Source: Laetmonice hystrix (taxonomy: Eukaryota). From it: a DNA stretch of 64,000 bases. This document shows, piece after piece, positions 46,997-48,659 of this stretch (positions are counted from its first letter, which is position 1; each line of letters opens with the position of its first letter). The stretch spans positions 4,402,001 through 4,466,000 of the forward strand of contig OZ249443.1 in NCBI GenBank assembly GCA_965235115.1, written 5' to 3'. Below the pieces are notes generated by a model, which saw only the letters and a program-made list of their open reading frames with translations, did no database searches and was not told the origin of the DNA. Both the position numbers and the translations under genes were made by a program.

Positions 46997-47144
46997 GTGT
47001 CCAACTGGTTTGGTAACAAGCGTATCAGGTACAAGAAGAATATTGGTAAAGCACAAGAAGAGGCTAACCTATATGCGGCCAAAACAGCAGCCGCAGCAGC
47101 AGCGTCCAATTGCAGTCCTGGCCCTCCAGACCCTACAGCCCAAG
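46997..47144 (+). CDS. Pbx: Pbx helix-3 exon variant A (canonical, 148 nt)
   Basis: ctgtag|GTG TCC AAC TGG...CAA G|gtcagt; [49 protein letters not shown]; phase 0 in, phase 1 out. Confidence 0.93.
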
Positions 47145-47660
47145 GTCAGTGAAGTTTCCCACATAGGTCAGACCAGGTCATGGGGTGGAAATAGGTCAAA
47201 AGGTCAGACCAAGGTCAGAGGTCATGGCCAGTGATGAAAGGTCGTCTCATGCCAAAGGACACGAGGTTGGGGTCGTTGTATCCTCAGTGTTGTGAGTAGA
47301 CCTTTTGTCTTTCGTCACTTCTGTGTGTGAAGGTCGTCTTGAGGTCATGACCCTTGTGCTTTTATTTTTTTTTTTGGAATAACGAAGTTGGTTCCAAGGT
47401 GGGGCCCACTTTTTCGGAGACCCTGAACAAGAACCGGGCGTGTCTTGTCGAGACAGGACTGCGGTGAGACAGGCTGTGTGTGAGCAGGTAACACAAAACA
47501 AAACAAAACCTTTTTTTGTGCTTTTCCGGTGTTGTTCTTTGATGCTCCTCTGTCATGGCGCGGCGAGTGAGCGGCATATATTGGCCCTCTTTAGAGTGAG
47601 TGCTCTGTGCGTACACCGGGCCTGGCATTGAACGGCTCTGGTGTCTTGTCATCTGTCCAG

Positions 47661-47793
47661 GTCTTCAACTGGTTCGCTAACAAGCGAATCCGCTACAAGA
47701 AGAGCCTGAGCAAGGGTCAAAGGGAAGCGGAAATGTACCAGATGAAGACTGCCCCAGATCCCAAGCCACCCAGCATCCCAACAAACTCGCCAG
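47661..47793 (+). CDS. Pbx: Pbx helix-3 exon variant B (divergent, 133 nt)
   Basis: tgtccag|GTC TTC AAC TGG TTC GCT...CCA G|gttcga; [44 protein letters not shown]; phase 0 in, phase 1 out; donor is weak. Confidence 0.72.
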
Positions 47794-48487
47794 GTTCGAA
47801 AACCCACCTGCTTGCTCACAACAGTGGCTCCATCTGCAGTGCAGCTTGGGCAACCACCACTACAACTTCTCTTTCACTGTCGGGTGGAGGGTTGGGGGGT
47901 GAAAAAATAGAAAGGAAAAGACATAACATTAGCACTGTGGACATTTGTAGAAATCTGAGAAACTTTTGTTCACTGAGAAATGAACACTGAAAAGTTCCAC
48001 ACGGCAGTGCTTGATTTGCTAAGTTGTGGAGGCCGGCCTGCTTCAGGGCACTGCTGGGAAGCTAGCAGGAAATGGTATTGTCACCAATGTGGCCTAGCTC
48101 AGCCAGAAGGGAAGTCAAGTTAAACAGGTAGGTAACACTAGAAGCCAACATACACGCCGCCAGTAGTAAGGCTCACCGATTCACCTTAGATTCTGTGAAA
48201 GCGTCACTCAGATGCTGAGGTAAGTGACTGGAACACCCACCCACCCACCCACCCCTGTATTTAAAAAAAAAGGGGGGACGCGAAAAACACATGTCACCAT
48301 CCCCAACCCCCTTGACCCTCCAGAAAAAGATACCCCCTCCCAATATTTTTTATAGGGGGGACCCAGAAGACGTTGGTGCTGATGCTATAGGTCGTCTGAC
48401 TGAGTTATGTGGTGTCTTGTCTCTACTAAACATCTCTCCTTGGTTTGGGCGCGCAGTAAAAAGTTGGGGCCTTGATTATTCGAGCAG

Positions 48488-48659
48488 GTGTCTAATTGGT
48501 TTGGGAACAAGAGAATCCGCTTCAAGAAGAATATTGGTAAGGGTCAAGAGGAAGCAAACCTGTACGCCACCAAGGCGCAGGTGGAGAGCGTAGCGGCAGC
48601 CACTGGAGCGACTTCCCCGGGCGTCCCACACTTGCCTACCAAACAGGAAGCAGACCAAG
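48488..48659 (+). CDS. Pbx: Pbx helix-3 exon variant C (172 nt)
   Basis: gagcag|GTG TCT AAT TGG...CAA G|gtttga; [57 protein letters not shown]; phase 0 in, phase 1 out. Confidence 0.8.

Follow-up and report, generated by a model that had tools for sequence, protein, structure and literature searches.

We consider it probable that the Pbx/Exd gene of Laetmonice hystrix contains a genuine cluster of mutually exclusive exons, old and conserved in annelids, through which the part of the homeodomain that includes the recognition helix is encoded three times within a single gene. This gene is encoded on the + strand of the window, i.e., the whole stretch of 64,000 nucleotides that was analyzed, and its three tandem variable exons are designated A, B, and C. 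Pbx/Exd is the universal partner that lends Hox proteins their DNA specificity, and it is usually viewed as having one invariant homeodomain per gene. The mutually exclusive use of the A-type and C-type exons is strongly supported by observations made in relatives, and it is presumed that exon B, as judged from its sequence, is used as well and that all three exons are used in L. hystrix.

Organization of the Pbx gene and its variable exons

The assignment of this gene to the PBC class is based on a PBC domain located N-terminal to the homeodomain, on the TALE three-residue insertion between helices 1 and 2 (YSHLSNPYP), and on the recognition helix, which reads WFGNKRIR and has Gly50, together with the fourth helix that comes next (QEEANxYA), a pattern to which exons A and C conform. 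Its identity as Pbx is also backed by matches to Exd and PBX1 in PDB. The middle of the PBC domain (VLSIRGAQ...ELEKYEQ) is encoded by an exon at 39635..39885 (+), whose splice sites were read from the sequence (Pfam PF03792, E 1e-23), and the end of the domain is encoded by an exon at 42603..42793 (+), whose junction was deduced from the frame (PF03792, E 1.3e-29); the two PF03792 matches were scored on window stretches 39637-39888 and 42606-42794, respectively. Since the reading frame requires the second of these exons to end at 42793, its donor at 42793/42794 is AAG/GCCAGT (slashes mark splice junctions), an apparent GC-AG intron. A run of 215 N is located at 40496-40710, in the intron between the two PBC exons. 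Exons for residues 1-82, at the 5' end of the gene, were not found within the 64-kb window.

The homeodomain begins in a constant exon at 45089..45224 (+), which encodes the N-terminal arm, helix 1, the TALE loop (LSN), and helix 2 up to Q44, matches the Pfam Homeobox_KN (E 3.5e-10) and Homeodomain families, and ends with ...CGITVSQ. It is followed on the + strand by exon A (46997..47144, 148 nt), which encodes helix 3 of the ancestral type and the C-terminal helix, by exon B (47661..47793, 133 nt), a divergent variant with an intact open reading frame, and by exon C (48488..48659, 172 nt), a conserved second type. A constant downstream exon at 49833..49948 (+; G-ASTYSMVPRPGSQ...NGDNY...SQ), which is entered in phase 1 and has a homologous segment in P0200 and other proteins, leads to the last coding exon at 50198..50272 (+), in which QSGYGSEGMPTSTSGMYDPHMQQV is followed by a stop codon, giving the C-terminus ...GMYDPHMQQV. 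The original prediction had placed the flanking junctions at 45224, 49833, and 49949; the first two hold, the downstream exon ends one nucleotide earlier than predicted, at 49948 (CAG/GTGAGT), and the start of the upstream constant exon has been corrected to 45089.

Each of the exons A, B, and C has an AG acceptor and a GT donor (for exon B, the acceptor is cag/GTC and the donor is CAG/GTTCGA, a weak site), all three lengths are 1 mod 3, and the encoded peptides are paralogous, with a shared helix-3 core of NWF-x-NKRIR-x-KK. The introns between them are 516 and 694 nt long, and GT-AG is found at every splice site. Neighboring homologous exons that resemble each other in length and share their splice phases are what is expected from tandem duplication. 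When a profile of the three exons was run against the 627-Mb assembly, there were three matches only (E 4e-30, 3e-29, and 1e-23), all at the Pbx locus, and the PBC exon at 42603..42793 had a single match in the same assembly. Since there is one PBC match and the helix-3 matches are found only at one place, there is one gene with one cluster. The translations and the genome-wide profile thus bear out the claim, made from the sequence when it was first read, of three tandem paralogous helix-3 exons between single-copy flanking exons.

Two other features of the 3' part of the locus were observed. A high-copy repeat is located at 49132-49683, within the intron that follows exon C; here contig depth is 10-25x that of the flanks and many loose ends are found. 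The last coding exon reads ...CAG CAG/GTATAA at 50264-50272, so that a donor after QQ could join a downstream exon, and a stretch similar to the long acidic C-terminus of P0291 (E 1e-4) is found at 57499-57615. This donor and this stretch may possibly constitute a long/short pair of C-terminal isoforms.

Transcripts of related species

The proteins closest to the L. hystrix Pbx are transcript products, with P0200 being 92% identical over the constant exons, and the closest named species is Capitella teleta, which points to an annelid or annelid-like animal. Two of these products, P0321, which has the A-type exon, and P0324, which has the C-type exon, belong to one 90%-identity cluster and match at every position (100% identity) in residues 1-279 and in the last 50 residues, differing in the helix-3 exon only. 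They represent isoforms that stem from the same gene, and each of them has one copy of the exon. Other transcripts are of the same kind. The C-type exon is the sole helix 3 in P0292, P0289, P0288, P0294, and P0324, and in the first four of these it is correctly joined to ...ITVSQ upstream and to G-AS... downstream, while P0200 and P0291 carry the A-type exon only. Complete Pbx proteins are encoded by contigs without introns that come from JGI metatranscriptomes and from Logan assemblies of RNA; of these contigs, L011, L012, and L014 contain the C-type exon only and L013 contains the A-type exon only. No transcript with two copies was found among the relatives' transcripts examined.

Exon B was absent from the transcripts and proteins examined, whatever the species, and no ortholog of it was identified. 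No B-type exon was found among the best 150 matches in a profile search of 50%-identity representatives, and a protein search with the whole open frame of B returned no candidate, although A-type fragments were likewise not retrieved by that search. When sequencing runs were searched with the 5-kb locus and with the last exon and its downstream region, where a 3' UTR is expected, the only runs found to hold the locus were three DNA runs from one sample, which yielded contiguous genomic contigs with no splice joints. It had been predicted that one gene makes three homeodomains. For A and C, this is upheld by P0321 and P0324 from a relative; for B, the argument is that of purifying selection, which is presented below.

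The exon cluster in relatives

The cluster is found in the genomic sequences of several relatives. A and C are present in L005/L006 (Logan), A and two C-type exons (C1 and C2) in L007 (an ENA scaffold), A, a divergent middle exon, and C in L008 (an ENA contig), and A, a middle exon, and C (151, 151, and 145 nt) in Capitella teleta (L015, GCA_000328365.1), while L009 (an ENA contig) has the C-type exon only and Owenia fusiformis (L016) has a single A-type exon. In the clusters of L005, L007, L008, and C. teleta, every exon is intact, is bordered by AG and GT, and has a length of 1 mod 3. A search for orthologous triplets in relatives had been suggested as a check of the original prediction; three copies were found in C. 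teleta, L007, and L008. Orthologs of exon C were identified in L005, L007, L008, L009, and Capitella.

In the phylogenetic tree, A exons and non-A exons formed separate clades (UFBoot 94-95), and exon B was placed in the non-A clade on a long branch. No order inside the non-A clade was supported, and therefore the tree neither joins exon B with the middle exons of L008 and Capitella nor parts it from them. There was no remnant of B between A and C of L005, the nearest relative for which readable DNA of the locus is available. Owenia is an early-branching annelid, and its single helix-3 exon suggests that the cluster arose after the split of Owenia or was lost there.

Further changes in exon content were observed at these loci. 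In a more distant relative (L009/L010; ENA ERZ27247885, JGI 3300004094), the 1359-nt intron that precedes the C-type exon contains no A-type exon, and the ancestral A form seems, as far as this sequence indicates, to have been lost. In Owenia, the helix-1/2 exon is duplicated in tandem (42011-42145 and 42362-42496 of L016, 135 nt each), as is a PBC exon (31021-31245 and 31297-31557). Public gene models of Capitella and Owenia miss or mis-join Pbx exons: the Capitella model P0290 omits the two extra helix-3 exons and keeps intron sequence, and the Owenia model P0176 fuses both alternative helix-1/2 exons into one protein.

Sequence constraint on the three exons

In helix 3 and at the beginning of the fourth helix, exon A is identical to Drosophila Exd (PDB 4CYC, chain 4CYC_B), which indicates that A is the ancestral form. 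The A exons of the relatives are orthologous to it, and pN among five species was 0. Exon C differs from exon A by Y56F, which amounts to the loss of one hydroxyl, and by A63G, and these two substitutions separate C from A in every species compared. The tail of exon C ends in a K-x-E/acidic motif (TKQEADQ in L. hystrix), and nearly all species have such a motif at the end of the C-type tail (TKQEADQ, TKQETPDQ, TKQESAD, MKQETD, PKLESAD, PKKESD, and PKQEMP); as a guess, it resembles the consensus of a SUMO acceptor. Exon B is the most changed, with S46F, G50A, N59S, I60L, G61S, A63G, and changes in helix 4, and it departs from the PBC pattern in having NWFANKR, with Ala50, and QREAEMYQ in helix 4.

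One alternative is that A and C are the only functional exons in L. hystrix, which are alternatively spliced, and that B is a duplicate that has fallen out of use or is decaying, in effect a pseudo-exon in which a stop codon is still to come. The absence of B from L005, its very long branch in the tree, its weak 5' splice site (GTTCGA), and the failure to find a B-like protein or fragment all speak for this possibility. However, the open reading frame and both splice sites of exon B are intact, and so are all residues of the helix-3 core and of the DNA contacts, namely W48, F49, N51, R53, I54, R55, K57, and K58. Furthermore, over the first 30 codons, pS was 0.92 for A-B, 0.82 for A-C, and 0.68 for B-C, which is saturated, and the corresponding pN was 0.24, 0.08, and 0.23 (Fisher p for pN versus pS of 7e-8, 8e-10, and 1e-3, respectively). 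Such saturated synonymous divergence together with low nonsynonymous divergence indicates that the duplications are old and that all three copies, also B, have mostly evolved under purifying selection since they arose. Extra exons in the middle position are intact in L008 and Capitella, too. We regard a non-functional exon B as somewhat unlikely. In the DNA runs that hold the locus, many variants were found in introns and one in the three exons, a synonymous GAG>GAA change in exon C at 48550.

Conserved intronic elements complementary to exons

The intron upstream of exon A cannot otherwise be aligned between species. It contains a 32-nt island at 46608..46640 (+), 389 nt upstream of exon A, whose core is invariant in the window, L005, L008, and L007. 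This island is the reverse complement of exon A at 47005-47014 (W-F-G codons) and at 47022-47033 (R-I-R-Y codons), so that a duplex of 10 and 12 base pairs can be formed, with further pairs reaching the acceptor AG. The duplex energy with exon A ranged from -36.6 to -40.6 kcal/mol in four species, versus -17 to -25 kcal/mol with B, C, and the middle exons. The helix is present in both the MFE and the centroid folds of 46595-47050, with a 370-nt loop that holds the branch region and the acceptor of exon A. The changes in this duplex across species consisted of two that preserve pairing as wobbles and one that breaks a pair, with no compensatory double changes, and therefore the support for the duplex comes from conservation and not from covariation. 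In the same species pairs, pS of exon A (0.36-0.65) was about half that of exon C (0.57-0.98), and this low synonymous divergence is as expected if the RNA sequence of exon A is constrained. In Capitella, a shorter element is found ~210 nt upstream of its exon A, where it pairs with the NWFG codons and fits all three exons, which in our comparison resembles a docking site with selectors inside the exons. It may be that pairing between the island and exon A sets the use of A versus the other exons, by either masking or activation.

A second element, at 44774..44858 (+), is a conserved inverted partial copy, within the intron, of the start of the next exon, and it pairs with 45082-45137. It is 93% identical to the L005 sequence, whereas the surrounding intron does not align, and its duplex of ~45 bp extends across the 3' splice site of exon 45089-45224 and ~47 nt into that exon. 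The energy of this duplex ranged from -49 to -51 kcal/mol among the window (-51 kcal/mol), L005, and L008. The element is not clearly kept in L007, Capitella, or L009.

The island at 46608..46640 is a candidate docking/selector site or a candidate editing-complementary sequence (ECS) for ADAR. In the latter case, both elements would serve A-to-I recoding of homeodomain codons rather than the choice of exons. What has been found, i.e., conserved intronic islands in imperfect duplexes of ~25 to 45 bp with an exon, and, for exon A, unusually conserved synonymous sites, is what is expected of an ECS; C-opposite-A mismatches fall in two codons of exon A, that of N51 (at +20) and that of K57 (at +38), and the constant upstream exon has an element as well, which would be superfluous if the purpose were purely mutually exclusive splicing. 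On the other hand, the duplex of exon A loops out the branch site and the 3' splice site of that exon and adjoins the 5' side of the exon cluster in the manner of docking sites, and the Capitella version pairs with NWFG codons that are common to all three exons. Editing without a role in exon choice thus seems possible but the less probable of the two functions, and we favor a contribution of the island to the choice between exon A and the other exons.

Convincing pairing partners for exons B and C were not identified in long-window RNAduplex scans, in which the background was high, and no Rfam match was found within 44400-50500. The decamer TTGGTTTGGG, which begins at +10 of exon C, has a second copy at 48440-48449, ~40 nt upstream of this exon. 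The copy at 48440-48449 is complementary to 46623-46638 of the conserved island (16 nt, 81%) and is not kept in L005 or L008.

Reading frame and exclusivity of splicing

It had been proposed that only the inclusion of a single variable exon keeps the reading frame, and in-silico splicing agreed with this. A, B, or C alone led to the normal C-terminus. With two or three variable exons included, translation would terminate 232 nt or more ahead of the last junction, and with all three skipped, 47 nt ahead of it. For A+B, A+C, and B+C, the homeodomain was complete, and the stop followed 2-6 codons after the start of the second exon. This frame rule may render the wrong exon combinations unproductive via NMD.

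Vertebrate PBX genes produce C-terminally truncated isoforms such as PBX1b, and the inclusion of two exons might be used deliberately in a similar manner, in which case the cluster would provide short, tail-less Pbx isoforms and would not be strictly exclusive. The double-inclusion stops would suit this purpose, as they fall just past the first included exon and truncate the tail while leaving the homeodomain complete. We nevertheless consider this very unlikely, because stops so far ahead of the last junction (232 nt or more) are expected to trigger NMD and because every full-length transcript recovered from relatives has exactly one copy of the exon. Among mechanisms that could enforce exclusivity, steric hindrance was excluded by the intron sizes of 516 and 694 nt and U2/U12 incompatibility by the GT-AG sites. 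An origin of B or C from separate genes was ruled out by their shared strand, by their position in one series of introns and exons, and by a genome with one PBC domain.

Origin and possible effects of the isoforms

The preferred explanation, that of mutually exclusive exons, would start with tandem duplication of one exon. This exon follows the classic homeobox intron, which separates residues 44 and 45, and it contains the codons for the recognition helix, for the fourth helix that is specific to PBX, and for a variable tail. Exon A would then be the ancestral copy, C an old second form, and B a fast-evolving copy of the non-A type with Ala in place of the PBC-specific Gly50. With one copy per mRNA, the isoforms would share the PBC domain, which binds Meis, the N-terminal arm, which contacts the minor groove, helices 1 and 2, and the TALE loop, whose PYP residues contribute to the Hox hexapeptide pocket, whereas helix 3, helix 4, and the tail would be particular to each isoform. 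Exclusivity would be achieved through the 1 mod 3 frame rule together with NMD, and the intronic element that pairs with exon A would take part in exon choice. The likely effect would be a set of isoforms that are graded in homeodomain stability and DNA affinity (A50 versus G50) and that carry different tails, thereby diversifying the activity of this Hox/Meis cofactor.

The fourth helix of PBX1 stabilises the domain and cooperative binding. As for residue 50, the G290A mutation in Drosophila Exd raised stability by 2.6 kcal/mol and increased DNA affinity three-fold, and the authors asked why evolution retains the glycine (Singh et al. 2024, PMC11112286). Exon B likewise has Ala at homeodomain position 50 (NWFANKR), the position of G290A, and by analogy the B isoform could therefore be a natural high-stability variant. 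However, G290A is an engineered mutant, whereas exon B arose naturally and contains ten substitutions in addition to this one. If the analogy holds, this natural Ala50 exon provides an evolutionary test of why PBC proteins keep a destabilising glycine. A more far-reaching version of this explanation combines several of these elements in a three-way recognition-helix switch that is set by intron-exon duplexes and by which annelids would adjust their only Hox cofactor of this kind, in which B would be a natural G50A form that is more stable, binds DNA more tightly, and is perhaps less dependent on Hox proteins, the C tail might be a SUMO acceptor, and the choice of exon would shift Hox/Meis targets. 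We find this complete scheme rather doubtful.

Comparison with known systems

Mutually exclusive tandem exons are already known as a kind of system, including TALE precedents in Meis. In Caenorhabditis elegans, exons 7a and 7b of unc-62 (Meis) encode alternative N-terminal halves of the homeodomain in tissue-specific isoforms (PMC3585033), and the Capitella teleta Meis gene has a mutually exclusive tandem duplicate of exon 9 (PMC3140891). As in the gene described here, the homeodomain of a TALE-class Hox cofactor is in both cases derived in part from alternative tandem exons. In contrast, each of the Meis cases involves two exons rather than three. The alternating part of the protein differs as well, being the N-terminal portion of the homeodomain in unc-62 and the recognition helix, helix 4, and the tail in Pbx.

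A closer parallel is found in oysters (Magallana gigas, Ostrea, Saccostrea, and Crassostrea virginica; RefSeq/UniProt), whose annotated Pbx isoforms differ in the helix-3/helix-4 segment only (e.g., P0299 versus P0254). Both oyster versions, known here from annotation, are A-like (RY...KAQ) and differ at N/T61, M/V69, T/S74, and in the tail, and therefore they probably arose by an independent duplication. A literature search found no paper on this isoform pair. For the helix-3 exon cluster of Pbx, no description was found in a full-text literature search that covered mutually exclusive exons, exon duplication, annelids, and Platynereis, and the Platynereis Pbx paper makes no mention of isoforms. 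The original prediction knew of no such arrangement in vertebrate PBX or fly exd, and this fits the few sequences compared, with the fly Exd in PDB having the A form only. However, alternative exons of this sort are not unique to the present gene, as the oyster Pbx and the Meis genes illustrate.

With respect to control by RNA structure, pairing between a docking site and selectors operates in Drosophila Dscam1 exon 6 and in 14-3-3 zeta, and competing structures operate in mammalian ATE1. The island at the Pbx locus is similar to these docking/selector systems in being a conserved intronic element upstream of the cluster that is complementary to sequence linked to a variable exon. Unlike in those systems, the partner in Pbx lies inside the coding sequence of the exon, and in four species there is an extension that is specific to exon A. 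Such anti-exon elements would constitute a compact and mutable system for the control of exon choice or editing by RNA structure beyond insects and vertebrates. Alternative recognition helices would allow annelids, and independently oysters, to vary the properties of a Hox cofactor without gene duplication, and a switch of this kind would bear on the evolution of Hox specificity in spiralians. In M. gigas, P0299 and P0254 also contain, at residues 168-199, an extra PBC-B-like segment directly after its paralog, which represents a tandem exon duplicate that is co-included.
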